This document shows positions 47,184 through 64,000 of a DNA stretch of 64,000 bases, in pieces; positions within the stretch are counted from its first letter, which is position 1, and every line of letters begins with the position of its first letter. The notes below the pieces were generated by a model, which worked only from the letters and a program-made list of their open reading frames with translations, was not told where the DNA came from and searched no databases. Origin of the DNA: Obrimoposthia wandeli. Its lineage: Eukaryota. The stretch is from contig CDROCS010001674.1 of NCBI GenBank assembly GCA_977020255.1, positions 248,001 to 312,000 on the forward strand, in the 5' to 3' direction. Both the position numbers and the translations under genes were made by a program.

Positions 47184-47981
47184 TCAATTTTTAAGGCTAC
47201 ATCTGCCGCCTTTTATGTAGCGAATATTGCGATATTCAGCGGTGATAGGCACACTGTTTTGATCAAACTCGCCAGCCCATCCCGATATTTCACTGTCTGT
47301 TGCCCATATATTCGCCATTATTCGTAATGGGCTATCTGTACTTGTTGGCGTAGGATCTGATGATGTATTCTTAACTTTGAATACAAGTTTTCCATCAATA
47401 AACCATTGAATCGCACGTTTAGTCCATTTAATACCATAACGGTGGAATTCTTCAGAGGCATCAAAATCTAAGAAAATGAGCCTTGCATGGTCATTGCTGT
47501 AATTATCATCGTTTGTCCAATAGTTAATTTGTAGCAGGTTGGTATTGTCACCTAAAAATTCGATATCGATTTCATTATGTTTACCATTACTTGCCTCCGT
47601 TTTATCGTACGGACCTGCAAATAAGAAAAAGGAGGTAATCACACCATCTGCCGCGGCGGGCTTTATTTCGGCTTCAAAGCATCCGTAGTTATAAAAATCA
47701 TGGCTACGTAATTCCCCTGATTGAAAAGTAAGATTTTGCGGATCTGTTGAATCTGGCGTATTAGAAAGTGTAATTGCCATTCCGTTTGTTGAAAAAGAAA
47801 CAGCTTCAGATTCCCAGCGATTAATAAAAGGAAAACCATTACTCCAGCCATCAGCTAGCCACCATAACTGCTCATTCATATTCGTTAGCGGATCATCAAA
47901 GCTAGTTGCTGAAAATGACGGTGTAGCCACTAAAAGAGCGATAAATAAAGGCATTGTGCGAAATGAAGAAGAGGTGGTCAT
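47184..47981 (-). CDS. Secreted GH16 beta-glucanase (licheninase/ExoK-like)
   Basis: Signal peptide ending SFS-A, intact EIDIEF catalytic motif, 'GVITSFF', 'FHRYGIKW', 'IMANIW'; start chosen at MTTSSS (ORF track gives 48062). Confidence 0.9.
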   Translation of the reverse strand: MTTSSSFRTMPLFIALLVATPSFSATSFDDPLTNMNEQLWWLADGWSNGFPFINRWESEAVSFSTNGMAITLSNTPDSTDPQNLTFQSGELRSHDFYNYGCFEAEIKPAAADGVITSFFLFAGPYDKTEASNGKHNEIDIEFLGDNTNLLQINYWTNDDNYSNDHARLIFLDFDASEEFHRYGIKWTKRAIQWFIDGKLVFKVKNTSSDPTPTSTDSPLRIMANIWATDSEISGWAGEFDQNSVPITAEYRNIRYIKGGRCSLKN

Positions 47982-48104
47982 AGAGTCATACTTTTTAATG
48001 AGTGAAGTACAAAAGTGTAGCAGTGAGATTAAACGATGAAGGTTGAACTGTGTGCCAAACATAAGACAAAAATGTATTAAATGGTATTTATCTGAGAATG
48101 AAGA

Positions 48105-49550
48105 CTAGTTAGTTGTCGTGGGGGTTAAAATAGCCTTATTTCCCCGGGCTTTGTACCAAAGTGACACTAAAATCAAAGAATTTGTATTGATGTTGTACGA
48201 TGCATTCGGTGCGTTATTTTTATAAACACCAGCAGGAATAACACGAGAACTTCGACTGTTCTCAATAACCGCTTGCCTTAAAATATCACTAAACGCATCG
48301 TCAAAAATAACGCTCAGACCAAATGCAATTTTATTGCTAAATACTTGTGGGTTTTCGATGGGTTTACCACCAGCAGAGGTGCTTAGCCAGCTTTTGCCAT
48401 AGAAATAGATATTGTTATAAGCAAACCATGGGCTTTTACTTATCGCATCTTCAGCGAAGATCCATAATTTTCCTGATTGACTATATTGTTGTATATGCAA
48501 TTGATAAATAACGTTTAGTTGATTCCACCATGCTGTACTTTCACCGAGTTCAATTGCTTGCAATACATAGGGGTCTGTGGTGAAAAAAGGGACATTACGG
48601 GTGTCGATATATAATGGGATATTATCGACATTGACGATATCGATGTGATCGCGAGCAAAGCTGTTCGTTACATCTAACCCCGCTAACTGATATCCCTGCG
48701 CTGCGTATTGTAAATAGCCTAATCGCCCTTCCTGACGGTAAAACTCATCATTCTTTTGATACCGCGTACCATAAAGCGTTTTTTCGTGCACAGCGCGAGA
48801 CAGTAACCAACGTTTGGTTATTATATTCACCTGTTTTTGAAAGTGTGGTTTTTGTTGTGTTGTTATTTCAAGCCAGATGAGCAGCCGACCAATATCAAGT
48901 GCCGACCATCCGTTGCCATTTCTATTATTTTTTTTACCCGAAGGTAGCCCCGTTTCTGTGTTGTATTCACGGTTAGGTAGCTGGTCATTATAAAGTGGCA
49001 TTGTTGTTAGGGTGGTTAAAATACGGTTTAGTTTAGCATCTGCCTGTACGGTGGTGATCAGTTCGAGTGCTTCTAGTGCAAGGGTAGCACCGATGTCGCT
49101 GCCAATATCCCACATGGTGGTATGATGATAGCCTTGGACTGAATCAGTTAACCCCGTTTGTTTATTTTCATTTCGTTTAAAATAATAACTCGCCTTTTTA
49201 GCAAGTAGCCATTCTTGCCGTGATATTTTGTCGAGAGACAATACTATCTCAGTGCTTACTTTTGATGAGTCCAATGTACGAAAAAGAGAATTCTCACTCA
49301 TATCTAGTCGATTGTTTTTCGATTGGACGTCGTTTTCAATGAGAATAGCAGGAGCAATAGCGCGTCTTTGGAACGTAATTTTTTCTGGTGGTTGTTGGTT
49401 ATTTTGTTGAGATACACTTCGTCCGCCATAGAAACTGGGTTGTTCAGGTTCTTTGCTCTCTTCATTGCTATAGGCGAAAAAACTCATAACAAACAATAAG
49501 CTTGTAACATAAGTACGGCATATTGTTCGTTGTGTTTTATGGCATAGCAT
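48105..49550 (-). CDS. DUF3131-domain secreted protein (putative beta-glucan-active (alpha/alpha)6 enzyme)
   Basis: Signal peptide ending AYS-N; 'YF..N....TGL..SV.GY...TMWDIGS', 'LPNREY', 'GWSALDIGRLL', 'EGRLGY'. Confidence 0.8.
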   Translation of the reverse strand: MLCHKTQRTICRTYVTSLLFVMSFFAYSNEESKEPEQPSFYGGRSVSQQNNQQPPEKITFQRRAIAPAILIENDVQSKNNRLDMSENSLFRTLDSSKVSTEIVLSLDKISRQEWLLAKKASYYFKRNENKQTGLTDSVQGYHHTTMWDIGSDIGATLALEALELITTVQADAKLNRILTTLTTMPLYNDQLPNREYNTETGLPSGKKNNRNGNGWSALDIGRLLIWLEITTQQKPHFQKQVNIITKRWLLSRAVHEKTLYGTRYQKNDEFYRQEGRLGYLQYAAQGYQLAGLDVTNSFARDHIDIVNVDNIPLYIDTRNVPFFTTDPYVLQAIELGESTAWWNQLNVIYQLHIQQYSQSGKLWIFAEDAISKSPWFAYNNIYFYGKSWLSTSAGGKPIENPQVFSNKIAFGLSVIFDDAFSDILRQAVIENSRSSRVIPAGVYKNNAPNASYNINTNSLILVSLWYKARGNKAILTPTTTN

Positions 49551-49856
49551 AATGAAGTCTCAATCCTTTGATACAATCAATATATGGTAAATATCTGATT
49601 ATTCAAGATTAATAGCGTGATGTTAGTAAGGTTATGAGTAAATATGTGAATTTGTATTCTTCGTACGTTCGTTATTATCATAAAAATGTATCGTAATTGA
49701 GATTGCATAAAGAAAGTGTTGGAATGTTGCTTTTGGGATTGTTTGAACTGAGTTTGGCTCGTTATTATTAACATATACCCAGTTACCTCAAGGTGTAGGG
49801 TTCAGAGTTTTATTGTGCTAGGGATGGTTCGATTAACGATTGGTAATGAGTGAGAT

Positions 49857-50528
49857 TTGTTGAAAGTGACCAGACAAAATAAGATTATTTTTACCCAATC
49901 GCATCCACTAAAATTACAGATAGGTGCAGATTCTTTACGCTTTAAACGTGCTGACTTACCTCATTTTAATCAAGTATTCACTTCTCGTTCTTATTTACTG
50001 CCTCGCTCATCGGCATTACGGTTAAAAGCATATCTAAATGAAAAAACATTGTTTCTACAGCCTTTTGGGCATTTAGATGAAGCAGAAGTGTTGCTTGCTT
50101 TCTCGTTTGGCGATGCGCCACCAGTAAACCAACATCTACAACAAATTGCATTAAGCTGCCGAAAGTATAAGCCGTCATTACCCTTGTTATTGCAGCAAGA
50201 AATCGCCGACGGTATGTTATTTAACAATCGCGACATATACAGTATCAAGGCTGCGGAATATCAGACAACCACAGATGTTGCAGCAGCAGCTTTATCCCTT
50301 ACATCGAAACGAAAAGTGATGATTGTTGCACAGGCGTGGCATGCTCAGCGCTGTATCGACACGTGTAAGATGTTGGGTTGGGATGTTATAGGGTTACGAT
50401 GTTCTAATCTATTTCCCAAAGATGACCCTCAACCATGGGTACGTCACCCTTTAAATTGGGTGATAAAAGAGAGCCACAGAGAACAAGCCGCTGGGTATGA
50501 AATTAGTGAGCAATTTCAGCTGATTTAG
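49857..50528 (+). CDS. Hypothetical protein with a DUF218/YdcF-like core
   Basis: TTG start; 'LLAFSFG', 'LLLQQEIA', 'QTTTDVA', 'MIVAQAWHAQRC'; lies 61 bp upstream of the T1SS ABC gene. Confidence 0.6.
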   Translation: MLKVTRQNKIIFTQSHPLKLQIGADSLRFKRADLPHFNQVFTSRSYLLPRSSALRLKAYLNEKTLFLQPFGHLDEAEVLLAFSFGDAPPVNQHLQQIALSCRKYKPSLPLLLQQEIADGMLFNNRDIYSIKAAEYQTTTDVAAAALSLTSKRKVMIVAQAWHAQRCIDTCKMLGWDVIGLRCSNLFPKDDPQPWVRHPLNWVIKESHREQAAGYEISEQFQLI

Positions 50529-50589: not shown

Positions 50590-52413
50590 ATGGAGCAAGG
50601 GATTTTGCTAGTTGATAAATTGAAGCAGGCGTTTACCGCGAGTAAGAAAGATATCGCTTTTGTCGGGCTATTTAGCTTGGCCATTAACTTTCTTGTTTTA
50701 ACACTACCACTTTACAGCCTGCAATTATTTGATCGTGTGTTAAGCAGTTCAAGTTTAGATACATTGTTTGCTTTACTCACCATTGCTGTTGTATTGCTAA
50801 CAGCACAAGCCATTATTGAGCATCTTCGTACACAGTTACTTCAAAAATCGGGTTTAAAGCTCGATGTATCACTCAGCCCTTCTTTATTAGCAGATAGTAT
50901 TCGTCAATCATCTAAGCAAAATCGTATAAGTAAGCAAGGTTTACAAGATCTTGCTGAGTTACGTAACTTTTTAGTCTCACCTTCAACCTCTGCCATTTTT
51001 GATATCCCATGGATTCCGATTTTTTTAATCATCCTATTTATGCTTCATCCTTATATTGGTGCAATAGCATTAGTTGGCAGTATTATATTTTCTGTTCTCG
51101 CTATTCTAATGATGTATGCGGCAAGAAAGCCGAGTGAGTATTCTAAAAGTTTAGGTATGAAAACTAATATGGAGTTGAATGATTACCTACGAAATGCCCC
51201 TACATTAAGGGCGATGGGTATGGCTGATAGCATTGGTTTGATTTGGAATAAGCGCAACAGAGAGCTGTTAAAACTGCAGTGGTTAGTCAATTCAAGAACA
51301 GGGCAATTGCTCGCCATTAGTCGTTATTTTAGAACGCTACTGCAAGTGGTTATTCTAACTGTGGGGGTAATGTTAGCGTTAGAACAGCAGCTTGGTACGG
51401 GCGCTATCATTGCGAGTTCCATTATTATGGCAAGAGTATTATCACCCTTTGAGCAAGCTGTTGCGGGTTGGAAATCATGGTATAGCGCGTATTTAGCTTA
51501 TAAACGCTTAAGTCATTATGAAGGCGAAGTGTCGAGTGAAATGAAAACAGCATTACCAGAGCCCAAAGGTGAGTTGCTGCTAAAGAATGTTGGTCTGCGG
51601 TTTGATAGCCAAAAAGAACCAGTACTACAAAATATTAGCTTCAAATTGGGTGCGGGTAATGCGTTGGCTATTATGGGTAACAGTGGCTCGGGTAAATCAA
51701 CATTAGCATCGATGATTATGGGGATTCATCGACCGTCGATGGGATCAATCAAGATCGATGGCGCGGCAATTGAGCTATGGCCTGAAGAACAGTTTGGTCG
51801 CCATATCGGTTTTTTACCGCAAGAGGTGGGGTTACTAACGGGTACGGTAGCTGAGAATATTTGTCGATTTAGTCAGGCTCCAGCAGAGAAAATCATTCAC
51901 GCTGCTCGCCTAGCTTGTATTCACGAACTGATCATATCTTTACCTAATGGGTATGACACTTATTTAGGCGAAGGTGGATTACAGCTATCGGGTGGTCAGA
52001 AGCAACGCATCGGTTTAGCGCGGGCTATTTTCTCAAACCCAAGCTTACTTATTTTAGATGAACCGAATTCTAATTTGGATCCTGAAGGGGAAGTCGCATT
52101 AGCGATTGTTCTTCAATACTGCAAAGAGAATGCAATTACAGTGGTGATGATTAGCCATCGCCCTGGTTTTTTACGTCAAATGGATTGGGTTATTGTATTA
52201 AAAGACGGCAAAATTGAAAAAGCGGGCACATGCGATAAGTTCTTAGGCGCAATGTCTGAAGTAGAAAAAGAGCCGTTACAAACCGTCGCTAATAATAACC
52301 CTAAAACCACTAATTCAAATTGTTCTACTCCTAGAGCATCAAGCTCTGAGCAATCATCATTAAAAAAGACAGTAGCCAAACAAGCAGAAGCAATGGGAGA
52401 TAACCGTGGATGA
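50590..52413 (+). CDS. Type I secretion ABC transporter, PrtD/AprD type (no C39 domain)
   Basis: 'LYSLQLFDRVLSS.S..TL', Walker A GNSGSGKST, 'LSGGQKQRIGLARA', 'LDEPNSNLD'. Confidence 0.93.
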   Translation: MEQGILLVDKLKQAFTASKKDIAFVGLFSLAINFLVLTLPLYSLQLFDRVLSSSSLDTLFALLTIAVVLLTAQAIIEHLRTQLLQKSGLKLDVSLSPSLLADSIRQSSKQNRISKQGLQDLAELRNFLVSPSTSAIFDIPWIPIFLIILFMLHPYIGAIALVGSIIFSVLAILMMYAARKPSEYSKSLGMKTNMELNDYLRNAPTLRAMGMADSIGLIWNKRNRELLKLQWLVNSRTGQLLAISRYFRTLLQVVILTVGVMLALEQQLGTGAIIASSIIMARVLSPFEQAVAGWKSWYSAYLAYKRLSHYEGEVSSEMKTALPEPKGELLLKNVGLRFDSQKEPVLQNISFKLGAGNALAIMGNSGSGKSTLASMIMGIHRPSMGSIKIDGAAIELWPEEQFGRHIGFLPQEVGLLTGTVAENICRFSQAPAEKIIHAARLACIHELIISLPNGYDTYLGEGGLQLSGGQKQRIGLARAIFSNPSLLILDEPNSNLDPEGEVALAIVLQYCKENAITVVMISHRPGFLRQMDWVIVLKDGKIEKAGTCDKFLGAMSEVEKEPLQTVANNNPKTTNSNCSTPRASSSEQSSLKKTVAKQAEAMGDNRG

Positions 52414-53704
52414 ATCAGAATTTGATACGAATCGATTAATCTGGGTTGGGTGTATTTTCATTCTTCTCACTGTGGGTGGCTTTATTTTATGGGCAACAAC
52501 CGCAAAGCTTAGTTCTGCGTCGGTTGCTTCTGGTACGTTAGTCGTGGAGTCACAGCGTAAGAAGGTACAACACCTTGAAGGTGGTTGGGTAAAAGCGATT
52601 TATGTGTCGGAAGGTCAAAAAGTGGAAGTGGGCGATGTATTAGTCGAACTTGCAAACAGTCGAGCTGAATCCGATTTTCGGCGCTTAATATTACGTGCTG
52701 TTTCTCTGCAAGCACAACACGACCGATTATCGACTGAATTGAGTAACCGAAAAGATCTTGTATGGAGTAATCTTTTTTTTGATGAAATTGAAGAAGGGCA
52801 GTTGGCCAATATTATTAATAGCCAACAGCTACAATATCAACAGTCTGTGCTTCATGAAGAGCTTCGAGAAGGCCAATATCAACAACGAAAAGTGCTATTA
52901 CAAGAACAAATCAGAGGGACGGGTTTTCAGCTTAGTGCGATTCAACGTCAGTTAGATTTGGCTAACGAAGAAATACAGATGACGACAAGTTTACTTAAAA
53001 AAGGCTTTGTTTCAAAAACACGGGTACTTCAAATTAAACGCTATCATGCGGGTATTGATGCTCAAAAAGCAGAACTAAAAGGCGAAAGTGAAGTATTAGC
53101 TCAACAGCTATTGTCTTTAGAACAAGATTACAAGTCTGAGAGTATTGAATTTAAACAGGGTCTTACCGCTCAAATTGAACAATCAGAAAAAGAGCTGCGT
53201 GATGTTAAGCAAGCGCTTAAATCGGCAAGAGATGTGCGTGAAAGAGTCAAAATTCGCAGTGAACATACTGGAACTGTGGTTGGATTAAACATTCATAGTA
53301 TCGGGGGTGTGGTTAATGCGGGTGATGTCATTATGGAAATAGTACCAGATAGCGATGCATTGATCGTTGAAGCTGTGGTTAAACCAGAAGACATTGATGT
53401 GGTCCGCCAAGGCTTGGCAGCAAAAGTACGATTGAGTGCTTACAATATCCGCCGTACGCCACCCGTTCAAGGTGAAGTCATTTATGTTGCAGCAGACAGA
53501 CTTCAACCTCGAACAGATAATAGCCCTACAGGTTATGTAGTCAAAATTAAGCTAGATCCAAATGAAATTAAGATGTTAGATAATATCGAACTGTACCCAG
53601 GCATGCCTACTGAAGTGTTTATTTTATTAGAAGATAAAACACTATGGGATTATTTAACGGCACCATTATTTAGTTCTTATTATCGAGCATTTAGAGAGTC
53701 ATGA
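52406..53704 (+). CDS. Type I secretion membrane-fusion protein (HlyD/PrtE family)
   Basis: 'VQHLEGGWV', long coiled coil, 'LYPGMPTEV'; 8-bp overlap with the ABC gene. Confidence 0.93.
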   Translation: MDESEFDTNRLIWVGCIFILLTVGGFILWATTAKLSSASVASGTLVVESQRKKVQHLEGGWVKAIYVSEGQKVEVGDVLVELANSRAESDFRRLILRAVSLQAQHDRLSTELSNRKDLVWSNLFFDEIEEGQLANIINSQQLQYQQSVLHEELREGQYQQRKVLLQEQIRGTGFQLSAIQRQLDLANEEIQMTTSLLKKGFVSKTRVLQIKRYHAGIDAQKAELKGESEVLAQQLLSLEQDYKSESIEFKQGLTAQIEQSEKELRDVKQALKSARDVRERVKIRSEHTGTVVGLNIHSIGGVVNAGDVIMEIVPDSDALIVEAVVKPEDIDVVRQGLAAKVRLSAYNIRRTPPVQGEVIYVAADRLQPRTDNSPTGYVVKIKLDPNEIKMLDNIELYPGMPTEVFILLEDKTLWDYLTAPLFSSYYRAFRES

Positions 53705-53777: not shown

Positions 53778-54029
53778 GTGCCTCTCATGGTGTTTTGGTT
53801 AAGTTTTTATGCGTTCTTCTTTATTGTTTCTGTGTGTATTGGTTACCATAAAGGCAATTTAATCGCAGGTGTGTTATTGGGTTATGTTCTTGGTCCTATT
53901 GGGGCTGTTTTGATGTATATGAGTAAAGACCGTAAGCATATCGAATGCCCTTCATGCCATGCTAATATTCATAAAAACTCTTATTTTTGCCCTGAATGTC
54001 GATGTAAGGTGATGAATGCTGTGGCTTAA
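53778..54029 (+). CDS. Small membrane protein with a C-terminal zinc ribbon
   Basis: Two hydrophobic segments with 'LGPIG', then CPSC-x10-CPEC. Confidence 0.7.
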   Translation: MPLMVFWLSFYAFFFIVSVCIGYHKGNLIAGVLLGYVLGPIGAVLMYMSKDRKHIECPSCHANIHKNSYFCPECRCKVMNAVA

Positions 54030-54060
54030 AAATCCGCCTTAACGAGTATTTTGATACAAC

Positions 54061-54088
54061 AAAAAAGCCACTCGAACGAGTGGCTTTT
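54061..54088. terminator. Bidirectional terminator between the T1SS operon and the RTX gene
   Basis: aaaagccactcg-aa-cgagtggctttt. Confidence 0.85.
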
Positions 54089-54124: not shown

Positions 54125-57100
54125 TTAGCTTATTTCTGAACCATTAAAGTTAATCTTGTCGGTGTCACTATCACTCCAGATCGTGACTTCGTTCCCATCA
54201 CCATTACTGAACGTGTAACCAAATAATCCATCAGTATCAATATTACTGGCTTCGTAGGCCTCACGAAGCTCATTGGATAAGTCGGCGTTGTTATCTGATA
54301 GCTCCCAACCAAACCCTTCAAGTTGCAGTGAGTCTGCTCCTGAGCACACGAATTGTCCGTTGGTTGCACTGTCGGTTTCGTTTAACAGTACTTTATCTAA
54401 AGCAACTTTCAGCTGAGCATCATTAGCATTAACTACAACCCCTTCAATTTGTTGGAGTGCAGATTGCGTCATGTCAATAATTTGCCCATTGTTGTCGCTA
54501 CCAACCGCTAATAGGTCGAACCCATCACCGCCATTAATATTGGTGTCATTCTTATCGAAGATTAATGTATCGTTACCGCTGCCCGCAAATAATTGGTCAA
54601 TGCCAGCACCACCATCCAGTACATCATCACCGCTTTGACCAAAGAGTAAATCATCGCCTGAATCACCATGAAGGGTATCGTTACCGATGCCGCCATCAAG
54701 GCTATCGTCATTGTCTCCGCCAGCGAGTGTGTCGTTATCACCACCGCCTGATAATGTATCGTCACCACTACCACCGGTTAATGAGTCATTCCCAGAACCG
54801 CCGTACAAGGTATCTGCTCCAGTATCTCCAGATAGAGAATCGCTCCCTGTTTCACCATAAAGAACATCATCACCGGAACCACCTTTTAAGGTGTCATTTC
54901 CTTCGCCAGCCCATAAGGTATCATTACCAGAATCACCTTTAAGCGTATCGTTACCAATATCACCTTTTAAGATATCGTTACCTGAACCGCCTGAAAGGAT
55001 GTCATTACCAGCTCCGCCATCCAGCTGATCGTCATTATTTTGGCCGTAGAGCTTGTCATCACCGTCGTCGCCAGTAAGTACATCGTTACCGCTACCACCG
55101 TATAACTTGTCGTTGTCAGCACCACCTGAAAGCGTATCATCACCAGATCCCGCGCTCAGTGTATCAGCACCTTCACCGCCAGATAATAAGTCTGAACCTG
55201 AACCCGATGTGAGTTTATCGTTGCCTTCGCCACCGTCTAACGTGTTGTTACCATCGCCAGCAAAAAGTGTGTCAGAGCCTAACCCTCCAACAAGAATATC
55301 ATTCCCTTTACCTGCGGTTACTGTATCGTTGCCATCGCCGCCATCTAAGGTATTGTCACCAGAATCGGCATTGAGTATGTCGTTACCCTCACCACCACTT
55401 AAGCGGTCATTTCCTGACCCTGCTGTTAGAGTATCATCGCCATCACCGCCTTCGAGGGTGTCATTACCGTCGAAGCCTTCTAGTCGGTCATTACCTGCAT
55501 CACCCCGCAGAATATCATCAGCAGCAGCTCCGTAAAGCACATCGTTATCGTCGCCACCTTCAAGGGTGTTGTTACCACTATTTGCATGTAATTCATCGTT
55601 GCCAGCACCGCCTAATAGTGTGTCATCACCTTCACCAGCAAAGAGTTTGTCTGCACCGTCACCACCCAGTAATCGGTCGTTACCGTCGCCGCCCAGCAGA
55701 ACGTCGTCGCCTAATTCACCTGAAAGTGTATCGTTGCCTGCTCCTCCTTCGATGGTATCGATACCTGCGCCACCAGAAAGGTTATCATTGCCTTCTGCAC
55801 CGCTTAGTTTGTCTGAACCAGAACCCGCAATAACGGTATCATTGCCACTGCCACCATAAAGGGTGTTATCACCTTCCCCAAGGTCAATGGTGTTATTACC
55901 TGCTTCACCATAGACGGTGTCATTGCCGTCGCCAGCAATAATTGTATCGTTACCTGCACCTGCATAGAGGGCATCATCGCCAGCGCCACCTTGAATTGTA
56001 TCTTGGTCTGCGCCGCCGTATAACGTATCGTTTTGGCTGCTACCGATTAATGTATCATCACCCGCGCCACCAAATATCTGATGGCTCCCTGTTGCCGCTG
56101 CGATTAGCGTATCATCACCGCCTTCACCAAGAAGGGTGTCTTGGCCATCATCAGTAATCGTATCGTTACCATCACCGCCAGCTAAGAAGTCGTACCCATC
56201 ACCACCGATTAATGTATCATCGCCAGCACCACCAAATAATGCATCGTTGCCATCGCCACCATCGAGTAAATCGCTGCCTGAACCTGCATCGATATGATCA
56301 TCGCCAAGCCCTGCGGTAATTGTGTCATCGCCGTCGCCGGCAAATATCTGGTCGTTGCCATCGCCAGCATCAATGGTATCGCTGTTAATACCACCATAAA
56401 TGTTATCAGCACCTGATCCTGCGGTGATTTGGTTGCTACCCGCTTCGCCATAAATTGTGTCGTCGCCATCACCCGCATTAATAACATCATTACCGCTACC
56501 AGCGTAAATGGTGTCATTACCTGCGTTCGACGTAATTGTATCATTGCCTGAACCACCGCCAAGAATGTCAGCTTCGTCGGCACTCACAAGAGTATCGTTA
56601 CCAGCATCACCGTAAAGCTGGCTAATACCTAAGTCGCCATCAAGGCTGTCATTACCATCACCACCTGCGAGAAGGTCATCTCCTTGTCCGCCGAGTAAGG
56701 TATCATTACCAACACCTCCGACTAAGATGTCATTACCATCACCGCCCTCTAAGCTATCGTCACCAGAACCGCCAAGTAAGGTATCAGCTCCTTCAGCGCC
56801 TTGCAGGTTGTCATCACCGCTATGACCTTCGAGTAAATCATCACCTTGACCTGCGAGTAAGGTATCGTTATCGGCACCGCCGTAAAGGGCATCGTTTTCG
56901 TTAGACCCAGTTAAAGTATCCTCACCTTGACCGCCGAAGAGTGAACTGCTGTTTGTACCTGCGTTAATGGTGTCGTTGCCGTTTTCGCCATAAAGCGCGT
57001 TATTACCTTGCTCACCATGAATAATATCGTCACCAGCGCCAGCATAAACGGTATCGACACCGTCACCAGCGTAGATTGTATCTATACCTGCTCCGGCGAA

Positions 57101-58852
57101 TACTTCATCGTTGCCTGTACCAGCTTGAATTAAATCATTGCCGCTGCCGGTGAATACATCATCATCACCAATGCCTGACGTGATTGTATTGTCACCATCA
57201 CCTGCATAAATCACATCATGCCCATCACCAGCATCAATGGTGTCGTTACCTTCGGCACTGTAAATCGTGTCGTTATCTGTGCCGGTATTTATGGTGTTAT
57301 TACCCGCACCTGCAAAAACGGTATCGTGTCCTGCGCCGGTATTGATTGTGTCGTTACCGGTATCGGTATAAACCGTATCGTCGCCATCATCCGCGGTTAC
57401 AGTGTTATTGCCGGTTTCACCATAAATGGTATCGTTACCTGTGCCGCCATCAATAAAGTCATCACCTTCACCTGCATAGATGAAATCATCACCCGCGCCT
57501 GCATTTATAATGTCATTGCCTTCATTAGCATGAAGGATATCGGAGCCGTCACCACCCTCTAATACATCATTGCCTGCGCCACCAAAGAGTTGGTCACTAT
57601 CAGCGCCCCCGACAAGTTGGTCGTTGCCTAGGCCGCCATAAACCATATCGGCACCAGCCCCACCCGTAATGATATCGTCACCAGCTTCTCCAAACAGGTT
57701 ATCGTTACCATCACCACCTGATAGATTGTCGTTACCATCACCACCGAGTAGCAAATCATTGTCTGCGCCGCCTTCAATAATATCAGCGCCATCACCGCCT
57801 AAAATGAAATCGTCACCAGCACCACCAGTGATGATATCGTCACCAGCGTCACCATGAATTTCATCTTTTCCTTCGCCACCAGATAAAGTGTCAATGCCTA
57901 AGCCACCGAATAAACTGTCGTTACCAGTGCCACCTGTAAGGGTGTCATTGCCATCATCACCGAGTAATATGTCGTTACCTGCACCACCATCGATAATATC
58001 GTCGCCCAACTCACCTAAAAGGGTGTCATCACCATCGTCACCGAATAATGTATCGTTTCCATCGCTACCTAAGAGGGTATCGTTATCAGAACCGCCATAA
58101 AGGGTATCGTCACCGTTACCACCTACGAGTACATCGTCGCCTTCATCGCCATAAAGAGTATCGTTGTTGATATCTCCGTCGATAAAGTCATTCCCCGTAC
58201 CACCGTAAATAGTATCTGAACCTTGTTGTCCAAATAGGCTATCGTTACCCGCTCCACCTGAAATTGTGTCGTTGTAGATGTTATTCGCGATAAATTCTAC
58301 TGATTCTATATCGGTAATATCTTTTCCATCGGGACCAACAAGTGTGAATGAAATTAGCTGTTCAGCACCGACTTCATCAGCAGTAAAAGCGATATCAACA
58401 ATAACATCACCATTTTCATCAATTGTCGCAGGTATCGTTTTTATAACGTTACCATCTTGGTCTGTTAACTCGACGGTGATTGCCGTGAATGCGGTATTAA
58501 CTGAAAATTTTGTTGTTATTGATCCTGATTGATCAACGACATAGTTACCTAAGCGAGCACTGTGAGAAATTTGTTCTTGTTCATCATCAGAAGAAGCGGT
58601 GTATTTATAAACAGTTTGTGCATCTCCCCAGTTGTCATTCGTTGCCGGTTTTGCTGGAGGTTCTGTACCATACTCAACATCCCCTAAAATGGTATCTGAA
58701 CCATCACCACCAGATAACAGATCACTACCTTCACCACCGACTACAAAATCATCTCCAGCTTTTGCATCGACTTCATCATTACCAGATCGCGTATTGATGT
58801 TATCGTCTTGAGTTGTCCCGTCCACTTTGTCGTTGAATTTCGTTCCTTCCAT
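54125..58852 (-). CDS. Giant RTX-repeat Ca2+-binding protein (1575 aa), probable T1SS substrate
   Basis: No Sec signal; ~6 N-terminal nonapeptides, a ~135-aa unique domain, ~137 contiguous GGxGxDxLx repeats, and a C-terminal non-repeat secretion domain; GAGG RBS. Confidence 0.93.
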   Translation of the reverse strand: MEGTKFNDKVDGTTQDDNINTRSGNDEVDAKAGDDFVVGGEGSDLLSGGDGSDTILGDVEYGTEPPAKPATNDNWGDAQTVYKYTASSDDEQEQISHSARLGNYVVDQSGSITTKFSVNTAFTAITVELTDQDGNVIKTIPATIDENGDVIVDIAFTADEVGAEQLISFTLVGPDGKDITDIESVEFIANNIYNDTISGGAGNDSLFGQQGSDTIYGGTGNDFIDGDINNDTLYGDEGDDVLVGGNGDDTLYGGSDNDTLLGSDGNDTLFGDDGDDTLLGELGDDIIDGGAGNDILLGDDGNDTLTGGTGNDSLFGGLGIDTLSGGEGKDEIHGDAGDDIITGGAGDDFILGGDGADIIEGGADNDLLLGGDGNDNLSGGDGNDNLFGEAGDDIITGGAGADMVYGGLGNDQLVGGADSDQLFGGAGNDVLEGGDGSDILHANEGNDIINAGAGDDFIYAGEGDDFIDGGTGNDTIYGETGNNTVTADDGDDTVYTDTGNDTINTGAGHDTVFAGAGNNTINTGTDNDTIYSAEGNDTIDAGDGHDVIYAGDGDNTITSGIGDDDVFTGSGNDLIQAGTGNDEVFAGAGIDTIYAGDGVDTVYAGAGDDIIHGEQGNNALYGENGNDTINAGTNSSSLFGGQGEDTLTGSNENDALYGGADNDTLLAGQGDDLLEGHSGDDNLQGAEGADTLLGGSGDDSLEGGDGNDILVGGVGNDTLLGGQGDDLLAGGDGNDSLDGDLGISQLYGDAGNDTLVSADEADILGGGSGNDTITSNAGNDTIYAGSGNDVINAGDGDDTIYGEAGSNQITAGSGADNIYGGINSDTIDAGDGNDQIFAGDGDDTITAGLGDDHIDAGSGSDLLDGGDGNDALFGGAGDDTLIGGDGYDFLAGGDGNDTITDDGQDTLLGEGGDDTLIAAATGSHQIFGGAGDDTLIGSSQNDTLYGGADQDTIQGGAGDDALYAGAGNDTIIAGDGNDTVYGEAGNNTIDLGEGDNTLYGGSGNDTVIAGSGSDKLSGAEGNDNLSGGAGIDTIEGGAGNDTLSGELGDDVLLGGDGNDRLLGGDGADKLFAGEGDDTLLGGAGNDELHANSGNNTLEGGDDNDVLYGAAADDILRGDAGNDRLEGFDGNDTLEGGDGDDTLTAGSGNDRLSGGEGNDILNADSGDNTLDGGDGNDTVTAGKGNDILVGGLGSDTLFAGDGNNTLDGGEGNDKLTSGSGSDLLSGGEGADTLSAGSGDDTLSGGADNDKLYGGSGNDVLTGDDGDDKLYGQNNDDQLDGGAGNDILSGGSGNDILKGDIGNDTLKGDSGNDTLWAGEGNDTLKGGSGDDVLYGETGSDSLSGDTGADTLYGGSGNDSLTGGSGDDTLSGGGDNDTLAGGDNDDSLDGGIGNDTLHGDSGDDLLFGQSGDDVLDGGAGIDQLFAGSGNDTLIFDKNDTNINGGDGFDLLAVGSDNNGQIIDMTQSALQQIEGVVVNANDAQLKVALDKVLLNETDSATNGQFVCSGADSLQLEGFGWELSDNNADLSNELREAYEASNIDTDGLFGYTFSNGDGNEVTIWSDSDTDKINFNGSEIS
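54560..58258 (-). repeat. 27-bp-period RTX nonapeptide array (~137 units, residues 199-1431)
   Basis: Parsed by hand; the span equals 137 x 27 bp exactly, with one 8-residue unit compensated by one 10-residue unit. Confidence 0.9.
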
Positions 58853-58926: not shown

Positions 58927-58945
58927 TAGGCATTAAGAATGCCAA
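58927..58945 (-). promoter_or_regulatory. Possible sigma-54 promoter or palindromic operator upstream of the RTX gene
   Basis: Minus strand TTGGCATTCTTAATGCC gives GG-N10-GC; it is also a GGCATT-N3-AATGCC palindrome, ~75 bp before the ATG. Confidence 0.4.
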
Positions 58946-59211: not shown

Positions 59212-60204
59212 TCAGAAGGTAAAAGAGTATGAAATAGAGAACGCACCATCTATAAATCGGCCTGTATCTTCTCCTCGATCTGATGAATTCCAGCGGTTAC
59301 CTGAGTAGTTATTATATTGGATGGTAATTGTGCCAGGGTGCCAATCGAAGTAACCAAATCCATAGGTGAAATCAGGATTCCAAGGCTGCTTTTGGCTGCT
59401 ATCAAAATAATAAAATGCAGTCGCATTGACATACCAATTGCCGAATATTGAATACTTACAGCCTAAACTCAGGGTTTTGTGGCCTTGTTTATAGGTTGAT
59501 GATGCAAGATCGAAGTATTCAGGGGTGAAGTTAAAATCTGTTTGACAGCCTATGGCTCCTTCCTCAGTAAAAGACAGCCAATCAATAAACGGTTTAGTAA
59601 TAGGAAACTTCCAACCCAAAGACCATGTACCCTGATCAAAGTTCGTGACGGGTTGCTCTTCTGTTGCTTTAAAGCGATTACCGCCGTAGTTGGCATACAT
59701 CAAGCTGAAGGTATAAGGACGCCAATCACTGTAGCCAAAAACATAGGTGAAATCAGGGTTCCACGCTTGTTGCTGATCACCGTCTATGTAGTAGTACAGT
59801 GTACTTGCGACAAACCAATTTCCTAATATTGTGTATTTTAACGATAACGTCGCGGTTGCGTTATTGTTAGTCGGCCCAGTCGTAGCATTGGCGGGCAGGT
59901 TAGCTGCAGATGTTTGAAGCATAGGATAACCAAGCGCAAAATTACCGCTTAAACCGTGTAACCATGAACGGTCTTCATTATCGTCATCCCATTCTTCAAA
60001 TGGCAAATCAAAAGAACTGGATACACCTTTCCAAATTAAATCGGATTCAGCTGGCTTAGGCTCTTCATCCAAGCTAATTGCTTTTGTAAAGTTGGGTGAT
60101 ATCGGTTTGGGGGCTTGTTTAGCCGTTTCAGCCATATACTCACTCGATACCGCAATAGATGAACATAGCAAACAGGGAAAATATAGAAATAATAATTTAT
60201 GCAT
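59212..60204 (-). CDS. Predicted outer-membrane beta-barrel protein with an internal 57-aa duplication
   Basis: Signal peptide, aromatic amphipathic strands, C-terminal FSISYSFTF (BAM-type terminal Phe), two copies of 'WNPDFTY.FGY.DW.P'. Confidence 0.75.
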   Translation of the reverse strand: MHKLLFLYFPCLLCSSIAVSSEYMAETAKQAPKPISPNFTKAISLDEEPKPAESDLIWKGVSSSFDLPFEEWDDDNEDRSWLHGLSGNFALGYPMLQTSAANLPANATTGPTNNNATATLSLKYTILGNWFVASTLYYYIDGDQQQAWNPDFTYVFGYSDWRPYTFSLMYANYGGNRFKATEEQPVTNFDQGTWSLGWKFPITKPFIDWLSFTEEGAIGCQTDFNFTPEYFDLASSTYKQGHKTLSLGCKYSIFGNWYVNATAFYYFDSSQKQPWNPDFTYGFGYFDWHPGTITIQYNNYSGNRWNSSDRGEDTGRFIDGAFSISYSFTF

Positions 60205-60441: not shown

Positions 60442-61701
60442 ATGAGAGACATTTTACTGGTTGATGACAATCGAACAATGCTGATGTTCATGGAAAAAAT
60501 GCTGACAAAGCGTGGTTTCAATGTCATTACAGCAAATGACGGTTTGCAAGCGCTGGAAGTGTTGAAAGTCAATCCACACATACAGTTTGTACTCAGTGAT
60601 TGGATGATGCCTGAAATGGACGGCATAGAATTGTGCACACGTTTAAAGTCAGGTAATTACTCTCGGTATATTTTTTTCGTTTTGTTATCAGGTAAAGATG
60701 ATCAAGCTTCGATAATCAATGGTATCAATGCCGGGGCTGATGATTTTGTTGTAAAAGATACCCATGTTGATGAGCTTGATGCACGTATTAGAGCAGGGTT
60801 CAGAACATTAGCGCTACATAATGAAATAACAGAGAAAAATAATGAGCTTGATGGTGCTTATGCGACCATTCAGAAAGATTTAGAGTCTGCAGGTGAACTT
60901 GTTCGTCGCTTATTACCATCCCAAAAGAAACTGACAGGTGTAGAGCTCAGTTATGTATCTATACCCAGTGCTCAGATTGGTGGTGATATGTTGGGCTATA
61001 TGCAGCTTGATGAAGATCATGTGGCGTTTTATTTACTTGATGTCGCAGGGCATGGTGTGTCGTCTGCCTTGATGTCATTTTCGGTTCAGCAAAGTATTTC
61101 AACGAATTCGGGTAAAGGCTCAATCGTTAAAATGCAAACATCAGAGCCGCCGTATTATGAAATTACCTCACCCAAAGATGTACTCAAGCAACTCAATGAT
61201 ATTTATTTAAGCGATGATGAAAACCTATTGTATTTCACCATGGTTTACTCGGTCCTGAATGTGAAAACGGGGCTTTTATCATTTTCGAGTGCAGGGCATC
61301 CGCCCTTAGTTTGGTTACATGCTGAATTAAATGATGCTGAATTTATTGGTCAAGATAGTTTTGTTGTCGGAGCGTTTGATTTTGTTGAGTTCCAAACGGC
61401 AGAAATTCAATTGGAACCGGGCGATAAAATTTGGATATATTCAGATGGGCTTACAGAAGCAGAACATGAAACGAAACAATTTTCAGAAGAAGGGTTGAGA
61501 CAAGCCGTTATCGATTTAAATCATCACTCCACTGCCGTTCAAACAGAATTATTGGTTAATCGAGTCAGAGATTGGCAAAAGTCAGAACAATTTGATGATG
61601 ATGTTAGCGTACTGGCAGTAGAGTGGACAGGTTATTCAGAAGGGGAACAAACATGCAATACGAAGTTATCAACAAGGGTCAATGCACAGTTCTTCAAATA
61701 A
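60442..61701 (+). CDS. Response-regulator receiver fused to a PP2C/SpoIIE phosphatase (RsbU/RsbP-like)
   Basis: REC 'LLVDD' and 'SDWMMPEMDG'; PP2C 'GGD', 'LLDVAGHG', 'YSDGLTE', 'DDVS'. Confidence 0.93.
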   Translation: MRDILLVDDNRTMLMFMEKMLTKRGFNVITANDGLQALEVLKVNPHIQFVLSDWMMPEMDGIELCTRLKSGNYSRYIFFVLLSGKDDQASIINGINAGADDFVVKDTHVDELDARIRAGFRTLALHNEITEKNNELDGAYATIQKDLESAGELVRRLLPSQKKLTGVELSYVSIPSAQIGGDMLGYMQLDEDHVAFYLLDVAGHGVSSALMSFSVQQSISTNSGKGSIVKMQTSEPPYYEITSPKDVLKQLNDIYLSDDENLLYFTMVYSVLNVKTGLLSFSSAGHPPLVWLHAELNDAEFIGQDSFVVGAFDFVEFQTAEIQLEPGDKIWIYSDGLTEAEHETKQFSEEGLRQAVIDLNHHSTAVQTELLVNRVRDWQKSEQFDDDVSVLAVEWTGYSEGEQTCNTKLSTRVNAQFFK

Positions 61702-61985
61702 ATGAAGGGCGGTTTGACGCTAAATTAGCACCGAGTTTTCGTCAAGAAATTGAATCTTTAGCGGGTAGCATTGATTCACATCTTGTGCTGGATTTGACGA
61801 ACGTCCGCTTTATGGATAGCAGTGGTCTTGGTGCTGTTATGGGCGTATATAAAATGTTAAAGGGTAAAAAAATTAGTGTTGTTAACCCGCAGCGAGCTGT
61901 AAGAGAGCTCTTGAAGTTGACTCGAATGGACAAATTGATTTTGAGTTATGAAACGGTTGAAGACGCTGTTGCGACCACAGTATAA
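61653..61985 (+). CDS. STAS anti-anti-sigma-factor-like protein (RsbV/SpoIIAA type)
   Basis: 'LDLTNVRFMDSSGLG' with the phosphoacceptor Ser; GGGGA RBS supports a start at 61653 (49-bp overlap with the PP2C gene). Confidence 0.92.
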   Translation: MQYEVINKGQCTVLQINEGRFDAKLAPSFRQEIESLAGSIDSHLVLDLTNVRFMDSSGLGAVMGVYKMLKGKKISVVNPQRAVRELLKLTRMDKLILSYETVEDAVATTV

Positions 61986-61996
61986 GGAATAGCTTA

Positions 61997-63145
61997 ATGA
62001 AAGGGATGATTCTGGCTGCGGGCAAAGGGACGCGAGTAAAGCCAATAACACAGACGATACCTAAACCAATGATTCCAATTCTCGGAAAGCCAGTGATGGA
62101 ATCAATGATCCAACTCTTTGCCGCGCACGGTATAGATCAAATTGTTGTAAATACCAGCCATCTGGCTGAAGTTATAGAAAACTACTTTAGTGATGGGCAT
62201 CATTTTAATGTTCAGCTTTCTTATTCCTACGAAGGGGAAATGAAAGGCGGTAAATTTATCAGTAAAGCATTAGGTTCTGCTGGTGGAATGAAAAAAATTC
62301 AAGATTTTTCCGGTTTCTTTGATGAAACATTTGTTGTTGTATGTGGTGATGCTTGGATCGATCTTGATCTCACTGAGGCGGTAAGACGTCACAAAGAGTT
62401 AGGTGGTATTGCAACGATTATTTCGAAAGAAGTTGAATTAAGTGAAGTCAGTAAATATGGCGTAGTTGTTACCGACGATAACGGTAGAATTACTTCTTTT
62501 CAAGAAAAGCCAAGTGCTGAAGAAGCCCTGTCGACACAGATTAACAGCGGTATTTATATTTTCGAGCCTGCAATTTTTGATTTTATTCCAAAGGAAGAAG
62601 AATTCGATATTGGTAGCCAGTTATTCCCATTATTGGTTGAGAAAGATATCACCTTCTATGCGACTAAGATGGATTTCCAGTGGTTAGATGTTGGTAATAT
62701 CAGTGATATTTGGGGTGTTACCAGCGAAATATTACATGGTAAAGTGCCGGGCTATCCTGTTCCTGGCACCCAAGTTAAACCTGGCGTGTGGGTGGGTATC
62801 AATACGGTATTTGATCTCGACAAATGTAATATTACCCCTCCTGTCATTATCAGTAGCGGTTGCGAAATTCAAAATGGTGCGACAATTACTGGTCCTGCCT
62901 TAATAGGTTCAAACTGTAAAATTGAATCTGAAGCGGTGATCAGCCAAAGCATAGTGTGTGACTATATCCATATCTCTGGTTCTGCTTATATTGATAATAA
63001 AACTGTTTTTGGTGATTACTTCATTAGTCATGATGGTTTTACTCAATCTTTAATTGAAATGGATGCCATTCATATACTGAAAGATAGGCGTGTAACGCAA
63101 TCTGTAGTCGTGAACAGAACAAACGTTCCAGCGTTTACACCTTAA
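61997..63145 (+). CDS. NDP-sugar pyrophosphorylase, CugP-like (non-GalU UDP-glucose pyrophosphorylase), with C-terminal left-handed beta-helix
   Basis: 'ILAAGKGTRVKPIT.TIPKPMIPIL', 'SYSYEG', 'KALGSAGGMKKIQDFSGFFDETFVVVCGDA.IDLDL', 'FQEKP'; matches cyanobacterial CugP as I recall it. Confidence 0.8.
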   Translation: MKGMILAAGKGTRVKPITQTIPKPMIPILGKPVMESMIQLFAAHGIDQIVVNTSHLAEVIENYFSDGHHFNVQLSYSYEGEMKGGKFISKALGSAGGMKKIQDFSGFFDETFVVVCGDAWIDLDLTEAVRRHKELGGIATIISKEVELSEVSKYGVVVTDDNGRITSFQEKPSAEEALSTQINSGIYIFEPAIFDFIPKEEEFDIGSQLFPLLVEKDITFYATKMDFQWLDVGNISDIWGVTSEILHGKVPGYPVPGTQVKPGVWVGINTVFDLDKCNITPPVIISSGCEIQNGATITGPALIGSNCKIESEAVISQSIVCDYIHISGSAYIDNKTVFGDYFISHDGFTQSLIEMDAIHILKDRRVTQSVVVNRTNVPAFTP

Positions 63146-63194
63146 ATATTTAAAGACTAGGTTTTTTATTCATTTATTTGTAAGGAACTGCCCG

Positions 63195-63647
63195 ATGGAA
63201 ACGGTTAAGTACGAATTCAAACAGCAATATAAGAGTTCCCTTGAAGTGTCTAGAAATATTGCTGATGATGTTAAGGCGTATTGGGCTGATATTGGTTTAG
63301 GACCAGAAGTTATAGACCAAATCGAATTATGCTTAGTAGAAATGGTGAATAACGCTTACGAGCACGCTTATCACTCTGAAGATGGTTGTCCTATAGAGCT
63401 TACCTCTTATCTTAATGACAAGAATGAGTTAGTAACTGAAATCTCTGATTATGGACAATCCATGTCTAAGGATGAATTTACGAAAGCGGTTAATAATGAA
63501 TTTATAGAACCGGATCCTGATGATCCTGAAACATGGGTAACATCAGGTCGTGGTTTTATTATTGTCGTTCAGTTAACCGATAACCTTGAATATGTAAACT
63601 TAGGCGATAAAAATACATTCAGGTTATACAAAAATACGAATGGCTAA
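63195..63647 (+). CDS. RsbW/SpoIIAB-like Ser kinase (anti-sigma-factor type HATPase)
   Basis: N-box 'EMVNNAYEHA', 'ISDYG', 'SGRG'. Confidence 0.9.
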   Translation: METVKYEFKQQYKSSLEVSRNIADDVKAYWADIGLGPEVIDQIELCLVEMVNNAYEHAYHSEDGCPIELTSYLNDKNELVTEISDYGQSMSKDEFTKAVNNEFIEPDPDDPETWVTSGRGFIIVVQLTDNLEYVNLGDKNTFRLYKNTNG

Positions 63648-63664
63648 TATTTTAAAGGGGTAGT

Positions 63665-64000
63665 ATGAGAATATTATGGCTAGTAATGGTTTTATTCTCA
63701 TTATCATCTTGCGCTATAAATGATTCTAATAATAACTGGCACGTGAATACGCAAGCTTTAGATGGAACATGGCAGCTTGAGATAATTGATGAAAAGCAAA
63801 ATAACAGCAGCATTGAAAATGTTGATGTACCCAATAATTGGCACTCAGTTGGAATAGAACATGCTGGTGTTGCCTATTATCGTAGAACATTTTCTATGAG
63901 ACCTATTAATAAAGAAGCGCGCTATTGGATTGATTTCTCTGCTGTAGATTATTTTGCTGAAGTTAGTGTTAACAATAAATTGGTTGGAAGCCATGAAGGG
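63665..64000 (+). CDS. GH2-family glycoside hydrolase lipoprotein, 5' part only (runs off the window; not in ORF track)
   Basis: Hand translation MRILWLVMVLFSLSSCAIND...VPNNW...GVAYYRRTF...RYWIDFSAVDYFAEVSVNNKLVGSHEG: lipobox LSSC plus GH2 N-terminal sugar-binding motifs. Confidence 0.8.
   Translation, partial: MRILWLVMVLFSLSSCAINDSNNNWHVNTQALDGTWQLEIIDEKQNNSSIENVDVPNNWHSVGIEHAGVAYYRRTFSMRPINKEARYWIDFSAVDYFAEVSVNNKLVGSHEG

Follow-up and report, generated by a model that had tools for sequence, protein, structure and literature searches.

The subject of this analysis is a gene cluster at the right end of a stretch of 64,000 nucleotides (hereafter the window; contig CDROCS010001674.1 of the Obrimoposthia wandeli assembly GCA_977020255.1, positions 248,001 to 312,000). 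The region analysed is positions 47184-64000 of the window, and it contains no N. We take the DNA to be of Photobacterium and read the region as the left part of an undescribed, widely conserved synthase-dependent beta-glucan system, which is under partner-switch control and carries a type I secretion system (T1SS) with its RTX protein as an accessory. The probability of this reading is, in our estimate, about 0.65. The system so read is self-contained: a UDP-sugar enzyme of its own, glycanases, a putative channel and a partner switch without a sigma factor belong to it, and its synthase would lie just outside the window.

The operon, its synthase and its control

The genes from the REC-PP2C phosphatase to the GH2 lipoprotein are separated by -49, 11, 49 and 18 nucleotides, and no strong terminator-like site was found between them. 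The tight operon that a first-pass annotation of the window had drawn here is therefore retained. The window ends within the GH2 gene, of which just the first 335 nucleotides are present, the full-length orthologues having 725-732 residues. An exact-match look-up of the RsbW-like protein of the window gave no hit. The continuation was therefore read in three relatives, L001, L002 (a Photobacterium profundum assembly) and L003, whose shared DNA is 88-91% identical to that of the window; the nucleotidyltransferase of the window is 95-97% identical to proteins of the P. profundum, P. frigidiphilum and P. indicum group. In these relatives the operon runs through GH2, a GH9 protein (567 residues), a GT2 of 616 residues, three DUF3131 proteins (439, 465 and 460 residues), an unknown protein of 358 residues and a soluble GT2 of 425 residues. 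An unrelated TRAP transporter follows. It had been predicted from the window that a glycosyltransferase would lie just past position 64000, and in the nearest relatives a BcsA-like GT2 is present there.

Contigs from marine-sediment RNA libraries, derived from a relative about 92% identical, span the genes from REC-PP2C to GH2 (window 60300-64000), and some of them bridge gene boundaries. This gives a weak hint that a related Photobacterium may express the partner-switch operon in sediment; carry-over of DNA into the RNA libraries is also possible.

The GT2 of 616 residues has BcsA as its best match both in family (TIGR03030, 208 bits against a cutoff of 699) and in structure (7lby, 6.5e-36), and no OpgH model matched it. 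Hydrophobic segments are located at its N- and C-terminal ends. The DAD and QTPQ-type motifs are present, while SED replaces TED and QRFKY replaces QxxRW. No record of a PilZ domain (PF07238) was found for this protein or for 120 of its homologues, and the database names of the homologues are all generic. The end of its gene overlaps the first downstream DUF3131 gene. The GT2 is the best-conserved protein of the cluster, with 77-86% identity across Photobacterium, Vibrio, Aliivibrio and Shewanella, compared with 39-48% across genera for the kinase. At least 58% identity is kept in Ferrimonas, Leucothrix, Methylobacillus, Paracoccus and two metagenome-assembled genomes, one deltaproteobacterial and one of Thermoanaerobaculia. 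The GT2 of L002 (15591-17441) has a charged insertion of about 60 residues between its FCCGAGS and SED motifs.

Co-occurrence was judged from about 20 loci, by tblastn maps and tables of called genes, and does not represent a census. The core of the cluster consists of the PP2C phosphatase, the STAS protein, the CugP-like nucleotidyltransferase, the RsbW-like kinase, the GT2 and DUF3131. In Photobacterium, Vibrio, Shewanella and Ferrimonas the order is PP2C, STAS, nucleotidyltransferase, kinase, GH2 and GH9 where present, GT2, and three DUF3131 genes. In Aliivibrio the partner-switch block and the GT2-DUF3131 block are on opposite strands. Thiothrix, Pseudomethylobacillus and Methylobacillus have the matching upstream order, and their GT2 gene is followed by one or two DUF3131 genes; the kinase match in Thiothrix is weak. 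In a Thermoanaerobaculia contig, the genes of a complete phosphorelay (a hybrid histidine kinase, Hpt, REC-PP2C, the kinase and STAS) surround those for GT2, GH2 and four DUF3131 proteins. In Paracoccus the partner switch, the GT2 and DUF3131 occur together and the nucleotidyltransferase is absent. The Paracoccus tibetensis locus (L092, 1693-3561 and 10738-11979) has a GH16 domain fused to RTX repeats, one DUF3131 fused to a GDSL esterase, and an OpgC-family acyltransferase (PF10129, 1.6e-48) directly after GT2-DUF3131. The first-pass annotation had made its proposal depend on recurrence of the gene blocks in other genomes, and the partner-switch, GT2 and DUF3131 genes indeed occur together across classes and phyla. 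No description of the cluster was found in the literature.

All thirteen genes that the first-pass annotation had listed were found in the open reading frame map of 47184-64000, at the positions given for them. Its domain assignments were confirmed by Pfam and NCBIfam profile searches of the window proteins, except that the DUF218 call is weak and the barrel call is also weaker. The features are as follows.

47184..48062, minus strand: GH16 beta-glucanase, lichenase-like, with signal peptide (PF00722, 3.9e-35)
48105..49550, minus strand: DUF3131 protein (paralogue w) with signal peptide (PF11329, 1.3e-91)
49857..50528, plus strand: YdcF/DUF218-like protein, a weak call (PF02698, 17 bits; atlas neighbours)
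50590..52413, plus strand: T1SS ABC permease/ATPase of the PrtD type (TIGR01842, 612 bits, cutoff 510)
52406..53704, plus strand: T1SS periplasmic adaptor of the HlyD/PrtE type (TIGR01843, 339 bits, cutoff 209)
53778..54029, plus strand: zinc-ribbon small membrane protein, 83 residues (weak DZR and Zn_ribbon_15 matches)
54063..54088, no strand: bidirectional intrinsic-terminator-like hairpin (11-bp stem, T runs on both strands)
54125..58852, minus strand: RTX repeat protein, 1575 residues, presumed T1SS substrate (55 HemolysinCabind stretches)
59212..60204, minus strand: outer-membrane beta-barrel protein of about 12 strands, candidate channel (atlas neighbours, low-confidence model)
60442..61701, plus strand: receiver domain (REC) fused to a PP2C phosphatase of the SpoIIE/RsbU type (PF00072, 1.2e-23; PF07228, 3.2e-39)
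61653..61985, plus strand: STAS protein of the anti-sigma-antagonist type, 110 residues from an internal ATG (PF01740, 7.1e-17); its open reading frame opens upstream, at 61623
61997..63145, plus strand: CugP-like sugar-1-phosphate nucleotidyltransferase (PF00483, 5.1e-55, and a left-handed beta-helix C-domain)
63195..63647, plus strand: serine kinase of the RsbW/SpoIIAB type, 150 residues (PF13581, 1.7e-19)
63666..64000, plus strand: N-terminus of the GH2 lipoprotein, the gene being cut by the window end (LSSC lipobox, orthologues)

Among the matches listed for the nucleotidyltransferase are proteins from more than 60 cyanobacterial genomes (Prochlorococcus, Synechococcus, Nostoc, Microcystis and others), which share 50-58% identity with it over 339-382 residues. 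We take these cyanobacterial proteins to be CugP. With this identity over the full length, the CugP-like pyrophosphorylase named in the first-pass annotation is supported, and by homology the enzyme is probably a UDP-glucose pyrophosphorylase.

The partner-switch set of the operon is complete, with the PP2C phosphatase (PF07228), the STAS protein (PF01740) and a GHKL serine kinase (PF13581), the last of which also gave weak NCBIfam matches to RsbW and SpoIIAB. Since the STAS protein has the canonical phospho-serine motif DSSGLG and the kinase has the N-box and G-box, the parts of the switch look functional. No sigma factor gene was found in the operon in any of the examined loci. The target of the switch is therefore probably the synthase or the nucleotidyltransferase. 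In two Aliivibrio loci (L088, 18782-21146; L095, 7355-9864), the GT2 gene is adjoined by a gene for a GGDEF-EAL (or EAL) protein and by one of the sigma-70 family; the other genera have neither at this place.

The first gene of the operon is REC-PP2C in all gammaproteobacterial loci. The input domain of the phosphatase is CHASE3 in Methylobacillus and HAMP in Paracoccus. No sensor kinase for REC-PP2C is visible in the window. Hpt proteins and hybrid histidine kinases are found in or beside the cluster in Shewanella halifaxensis (L089, 20129-20455), the Thermoanaerobaculia contig (L094, 5115-5483 and 16418-18493) and Thiothrix (L012, 5876-7222). These proteins point to a phosphorelay that feeds REC-PP2C.

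The switch also occurs in other company. In an Acidobacteriaceae locus (L086, 7323-12273; 5505-7262), glycogen phosphorylase, a CugP-like nucleotidyltransferase, STAS and inorganic pyrophosphatase are encoded together, with REC-PP2C and an RsbW-like kinase divergent from them. This layout suggests that the sugar-nucleotide step can itself be under the control of the switch. In a Thiothrix locus, REC-PP2C and STAS are likewise paired with the nucleotidyltransferase. The company of the switch thus differs between lineages, being the synthase in some and the sugar-nucleotide enzyme in others.

The DUF3131 proteins and the kind of glucan

The system has four DUF3131 paralogues. Three of them (a, b and c) are encoded downstream of the GT2, and the fourth (w) is encoded in the window. 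Paralogue a is predicted to have a transmembrane anchor, b and c have lipoboxes, and w has a signal peptide. An AlphaFold2 model of w (pLDDT 80) was compared with solved structures. The top 18 Foldseek matches were all beta-1,2-glucan enzymes (GH144, GH192, GH189/Cgs, GH194 and GH162). In VIA-align, the model gave a Z score of 34.5 to 8wy1, the cyclization domain of GH189, scores of 27-31 to GH144, Cgs, GH192 and GH194 (28-31 to the Cgs structures 8rf9, 8rfe and 8rf0) and 23.8 to GH162, compared with 22 or less for unrelated six-hairpin enzymes. In addition, the DUF3131 family profile matches 8wy1 at 4e-6. Single DUF3131 sequences gave no match to solved structures, including the characterised 8xuj, 8xuk and 5gzk. 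In the model, DUF3131 forms one (alpha/alpha)6 barrel that is nearest to the members of the SGL clan (GH144, GH162, GH189 and GH192-194). A Glu/Phe/Tyr triad and catalytic acids define this clan (PMC12102758). By its predicted fold, DUF3131 belongs to the fold clan of the beta-1,2-glucan enzymes. We found no paper that treats DUF3131 (PF11329) as an enzyme.

Across 14 DUF3131 sequences, D316, E334 and E367 do not vary. Paralogues a and b and the copies of Thiothrix and Methylophilaceae all retain a conserved pair of Trp and Asp as well as two Tyr residues, and w keeps the Trp-Asp pair and one Tyr. Paralogue c has lost the pair and both Tyr residues (L010, 16273-17655; L009, 16406-17794; L011, 16276-17658), and judging from these residues it may be a binding protein, not an enzyme. 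Five acidic positions that a and b conserve are lost in w.

Photobacterium gaetbulicola has biochemically proven beta-1,2-glucanases, which are encoded elsewhere in its genome (PMC12102758). The possibility that the DUF3131 proteins of the cluster are these enzymes, PgSGL1 and PgSGL3 (GH192/GH194), was considered and rejected; phmmer searches with the P. gaetbulicola cluster proteins matched no solved structure.

The other hydrolases of the cluster have relatives of different specificity. The best NCBIfam match of the GH16 protein is the lichenase BglS (201 bits, under the cutoff), and its nearest solved relatives are bacterial 1,3-1,4-beta-glucanases (1gbg, 1.6e-36). Those of the GH9 protein, which has a predicted signal peptide, are endo-beta-1,4-glucanases, and those of the GH2 protein are beta-mannosidase-type enzymes (5n6u, 2.8e-43). 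All of the glycanase-like proteins have a signal peptide, a lipobox or a transmembrane anchor. The GH2 and GH9 genes occupy matching positions in Methylophilaceae and Photobacterium. They are therefore ancestral, and they are lost in Vibrio, Aliivibrio and some Shewanella. The GH16 gene is found at the opposite end of the cluster in two Vibrio loci (L010 and L011).

On the basis of these assignments, we infer the following order of steps. The CugP-type enzyme would make UDP-glucose, and the BcsA-like membrane GT2 would polymerise the glucose and pass the chain into the periplasm. The three downstream DUF3131 proteins and their secreted paralogue from the window could then cut, transfer or cyclise the chain. 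The GH9, GH2 and GH16 enzymes would trim the product, which the small outer-membrane barrel may release. The process would be gated after translation. A sensor kinase would phosphorylate the receiver domain and so set the activity of the PP2C phosphatase, which would dephosphorylate the STAS protein. The unphosphorylated STAS protein would either capture the RsbW-like kinase or act directly, and thereby free or activate the target.

There are several observations that weigh against this scheme. The continuation of the operon is known from relatives, and the DNA of the window itself stops in GH2. The NCBIfam matches of the nucleotidyltransferase are below threshold for several NDP-sugar synthases, the best being mannose-1-phosphate guanylyltransferase (175 bits against a cutoff of 440), and it is from homology that we infer its nucleotide and sugar specificity. 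The altered QxxRW motif of the GT2 could mean an unusual chemistry. As to the target of the switch, the Paracoccus and Thermoanaerobaculia clusters are without the nucleotidyltransferase, and in one Acidobacteriaceae and one Thiothrix locus the switch stands beside the nucleotidyltransferase with no GT2 nearby. The signals for the linkage are also in conflict. The SGL-clan fold indicates beta-1,2, GH16 beta-1,3-1,4 and GH9 beta-1,4, and the nearest relatives of GH2 are beta-mannosidases. The affinities of the hydrolases are thus at odds with the beta-1,2 signal of DUF3131.

A special case of the proposed system is a glucan resembling the osmoregulated periplasmic glucans (OPG), or a cyclic beta-1,2-type glucan, which would be made by a split form of the Cgs/Opg logic. 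We take BMEI1837 of Brucella to be Cgs. In a paper on Brucella, this protein is listed under the NCBI label of 'DUF3131 domain-containing protein' (PMC6382750), which speaks for this case. The OpgC-family acyltransferase that follows GT2-DUF3131 in Paracoccus points in the same direction, as do the small size of the barrel and the fact that the accessory enzymes all face the envelope. Furthermore, in a network study of Shewanella piezotolerans the DUF3131 genes formed a module under salt shock (PMC8371737), but the link from such a network to a glucan is indirect. On the other hand, the GT2 matches BcsA and not OpgH, the relatives of GH16 and GH9 act on beta-1,3-1,4 and beta-1,4 bonds, and the distance between DUF3131 and those GH144 and GH192-194 enzymes that have been characterised is too great to give a match in sequence. 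We therefore regard this special case as possible and hold it tentatively.

With the same reserve, the cluster might be seen as a third way of making envelope glucans of the beta-1,2 type, possibly cyclic ones, in split form. In such a route the GT2 would export the chain, GH189-like DUF3131 proteins would trim or cyclise it in the periplasm, and the switch without a sigma factor would turn the whole pathway on and off by acting on an enzyme, either the CugP-type pyrophosphorylase or the synthase, and not on a transcription factor. The DUF3131 fold, the OpgC of Paracoccus and the small 12-strand barrel favour an oligo- or cyclic glucan of the beta-1,2 type, periplasmic or released, at least as much as a biofilm fibre.

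The secretion genes and the outer-membrane barrel

The genes of the T1SS ABC protein and its adaptor overlap by 8 nucleotides. The RTX protein has 81 GxGxD motifs, mostly with a spacing of nine residues, and consists of 22% Gly and 18% Asp. It is nearly pure repeat with no enzyme domain, apart from an N-domain without repeats, at about residues 55-200, and a tail of some 140 residues at the C-terminus. An ABC protein, a membrane-fusion protein and a nonapeptide-repeat substrate with a non-repeat tail are thus all present. No TolC-type outer-membrane partner was found in the locus, the 330-residue barrel not being TolC-like, and such a partner is presumably encoded elsewhere. The hairpin at 54063-54088 separates the convergent zinc-ribbon and RTX genes. 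The GC content is about 50% over the RTX gene (window 54000-59000) and about 40% around it. We considered this as a sign of foreign origin and rejected it, since it is due to the Gly and Asp codons.

Orthologues of the non-repeat ends of the RTX protein were found in Aliivibrio (L088) and in two Vibrio loci (L010 and L011), and none in Shewanella L008. In Photobacterium, Vibrio renipiscarius, V. maerlii and Aliivibrio salmonicida, the RTX orthologues all lie between the zinc-ribbon and barrel genes. In L004-L006, whose nucleotidyltransferase is 96% identical, the block of ABC and adaptor genes and the RTX gene are absent, and the zinc-ribbon gene between them is retained. At the junction in L004 (6440-6460; window 50590-50603 and 53768-53780), the first 8 nucleotides of the ABC gene, including the start codon, are kept, with a GGGAT microhomology. 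Since the start of the ABC gene is still there at the junction, the T1SS block must have been deleted in the L004 lineage and is ancestral; for the same reason, a recent insertion of T1SS/RTX in the window was rejected. The RTX gene was lost in L004-L006 by a second, separate deletion. T1SS and RTX are also absent from P. gaetbulicola (L007), Shewanella (L009 and L089), Ferrimonas (L090), Thiothrix (L012) and Methylophilaceae (L018 and L093). In view of these intact clusters and of the two deletions in a close Photobacterium lineage, T1SS/RTX is a dispensable accessory, ancestral to the Vibrionaceae versions of the cluster. The pair is probably a secreted calcium-binding partner of the glucan.

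The zinc-ribbon protein has two hydrophobic, transmembrane segments and a C-terminal CxxC...CxxC. Its gene is retained in L004-L007 without T1SS/RTX and is also found in Vibrio and Aliivibrio. The barrel protein is also conserved in P. gaetbulicola, Vibrio, Aliivibrio and Ferrimonas, where it shows 51-75% identity, with or without the RTX gene. Both proteins are therefore independent of the T1SS. As for the outer-membrane barrel of the first-pass annotation, the assignment agrees with the atlas neighbours (clusters of outer-membrane barrels, OmpG and KdgM-like proteins) and the C-terminal aromatic residue, while the Pfam PLA1 match is below threshold and the model is of low confidence (12 strands, pLDDT 61; best folds FapF, NanC and OmpG). 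What the model supports is just a small barrel of roughly 12 strands. The barrel contains an internal duplication, each half having a near-invariant WNPDFTY-FGY-DWRP ... NY-GNR in Photobacterium, Vibrio, Aliivibrio and Ferrimonas. This conservation is unusually strict for a plain porin.

The first-pass annotation had proposed a matrix system, in which the product would be a biofilm-matrix beta-glucan, the RTX rod secreted by the T1SS its obligatory scaffold, and the barrel the pore for polymer export. The constant position of the RTX orthologues with matching ends speaks for this proposal, as does the ancestral presence of the T1SS before its loss at the L004 junction. A different T1SS and RTX protein abut the operon in Shewanella L008, and in the Paracoccus cluster GH16 and RTX are fused. 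An obligatory scaffold is, however, hard to reconcile with the many intact clusters that have no T1SS/RTX (L004-L007, L009, L089, L090, L012, L018 and L093). In addition, no exporter of the BcsC, PgaA, Wza or AlgE type was found in the cluster, and the modelled barrel of about 12 strands has the size of an oligosaccharide or peptide channel. We therefore consider the matrix proposal unlikely in this strict form.

It is very improbable that the region is instead a catabolic cluster for the use of laminarin, lichenan or beta-1,2-glucan beside unrelated signalling and secretion genes. The glycoside hydrolase genes are many (GH16, GH9, GH2 and four DUF3131) and P. gaetbulicola does possess the beta-1,2-glucanases mentioned above, but the hydrolases share their transcript with a processive membrane GT2 and a sugar-nucleotide synthase, and the gene of this GT2 overlaps a DUF3131 gene. 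Among the called genes of the relatives, none for sugar uptake or cytoplasmic catabolism was found in the cluster, which is without a transporter for sugars, a phosphorylase or a cytoplasmic glucosidase. Furthermore, the DUF3131 proteins of the P. gaetbulicola cluster differ from the characterised PgSGL enzymes, and the synteny is also kept in methylotrophs and Thiothrix.

The left border of the synthase-dependent system is set at the GH16 gene, since the genes at 42824-47142 do not accompany the cluster outside this genus. They encode a nucleoside transporter, a GFO/IDH/MocA oxidoreductase, an ABM monooxygenase and a LysR regulator. The DUF218-like protein, which had been counted as a member of the system, scores 17 bits in Pfam (E 0.0046, under the cutoff) and has the YdcF family as its nearest protein-atlas cluster (score 0.95). 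Its gene was seen only in loci of the P. profundum group. It is thus lineage-specific and probably stands outside the system.

Relation to known systems

The first-pass annotation had described the gene set as unlike the known systems, and our comparison agrees with this in that no match to bcs, syp or opg was found. The resemblance to Bcs lies in the processive membrane GT2 with transmembrane segments at both ends and in the co-transcribed endoglucanase, which is GH9 here and the GH8 enzyme BcsZ in Bcs. The synthase here, however, has no PilZ domain and has altered motifs, and a partner switch takes the place of control by cyclic di-GMP. No BcsB- or BcsC-like gene was found within a context of about 30 kb, nor among the genes called in L001-L007, L088-L091 and L095. 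Furthermore, three or four SGL-clan proteins are encoded here, and no bcs operon is known to have them.

Cgs is related through DUF3131, which is structurally closest to the Cgs cyclization domain and matches it also at the level of the profile. In Cgs, however, the (alpha/alpha)6 module is a cytoplasmic domain, whereas here it forms separate exported proteins. The polymerase here is a GT2 and not a GT84, and there is no GH94 domain. The OPG system (OpgH/OpgG/OpgD/OpgC) has in common with the cluster an inner-membrane GT2 and periplasmic glucan-processing enzymes, and the Paracoccus version adds OpgC. No cluster protein, however, matched the OpgH or OpgG models, the SGL clan replaces OpgG/D of GH186, and OpgC is absent from the Photobacterium cluster, being confined to the Paracoccus version.

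In Vibrio fischeri, SypA (STAS) and SypE (RsbW-REC-PP2C) are reported to regulate the syp locus, which has multiple glycosyltransferases. The likeness to the present cluster is considerable, since in both a phosphorylatable STAS protein, an RsbW-type kinase and a receiver-controlled PP2C phosphatase are found in a polysaccharide locus that encodes no sigma target. The differences are that the kinase and the phosphatase are separate proteins here, that the nucleotidyltransferase gene lies between those of STAS and the kinase, and that there is a single BcsA-like synthase.

Sinorhizobium meliloti is said to secrete the glycanases ExoK and ExsH with the PrsDE T1SS, and Vibrio vulnificus is said to pair CabA with brp. 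A GH16 endo-glycanase, a PrtD/PrtE-type T1SS and an RTX substrate are likewise found here beside polysaccharide genes, and the GH16-RTX fusion of the Paracoccus version is reminiscent of ExsH. The GH16 protein of the window, however, is without RTX repeats and carries a Sec signal, the RTX protein is free of enzyme domains, and the polysaccharide machinery is different. The cluster would combine a synthase-dependent glucan system with partner-switch control of a polysaccharide, both of which are of known kinds.

The synthase represents a large family on which we found no paper, and its members in Gamma-, Beta-, Alpha- and Deltaproteobacteria and in Acidobacteriota share at least 58% identity. 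The family is present in the tractable Aliivibrio fischeri, Shewanella and Methylobacillus. The cluster also offers a test case for partner switches with outputs other than a sigma factor, as the switch is paired with the synthase in some lineages and, in one Acidobacteriaceae locus, with a UDP-sugar enzyme. Finally, the predicted place of DUF3131 in the clan of the beta-1,2-glucan enzymes would suggest a substrate class for this family, and may give a hint as to where envelope glucans occur in bacteria without Cgs.

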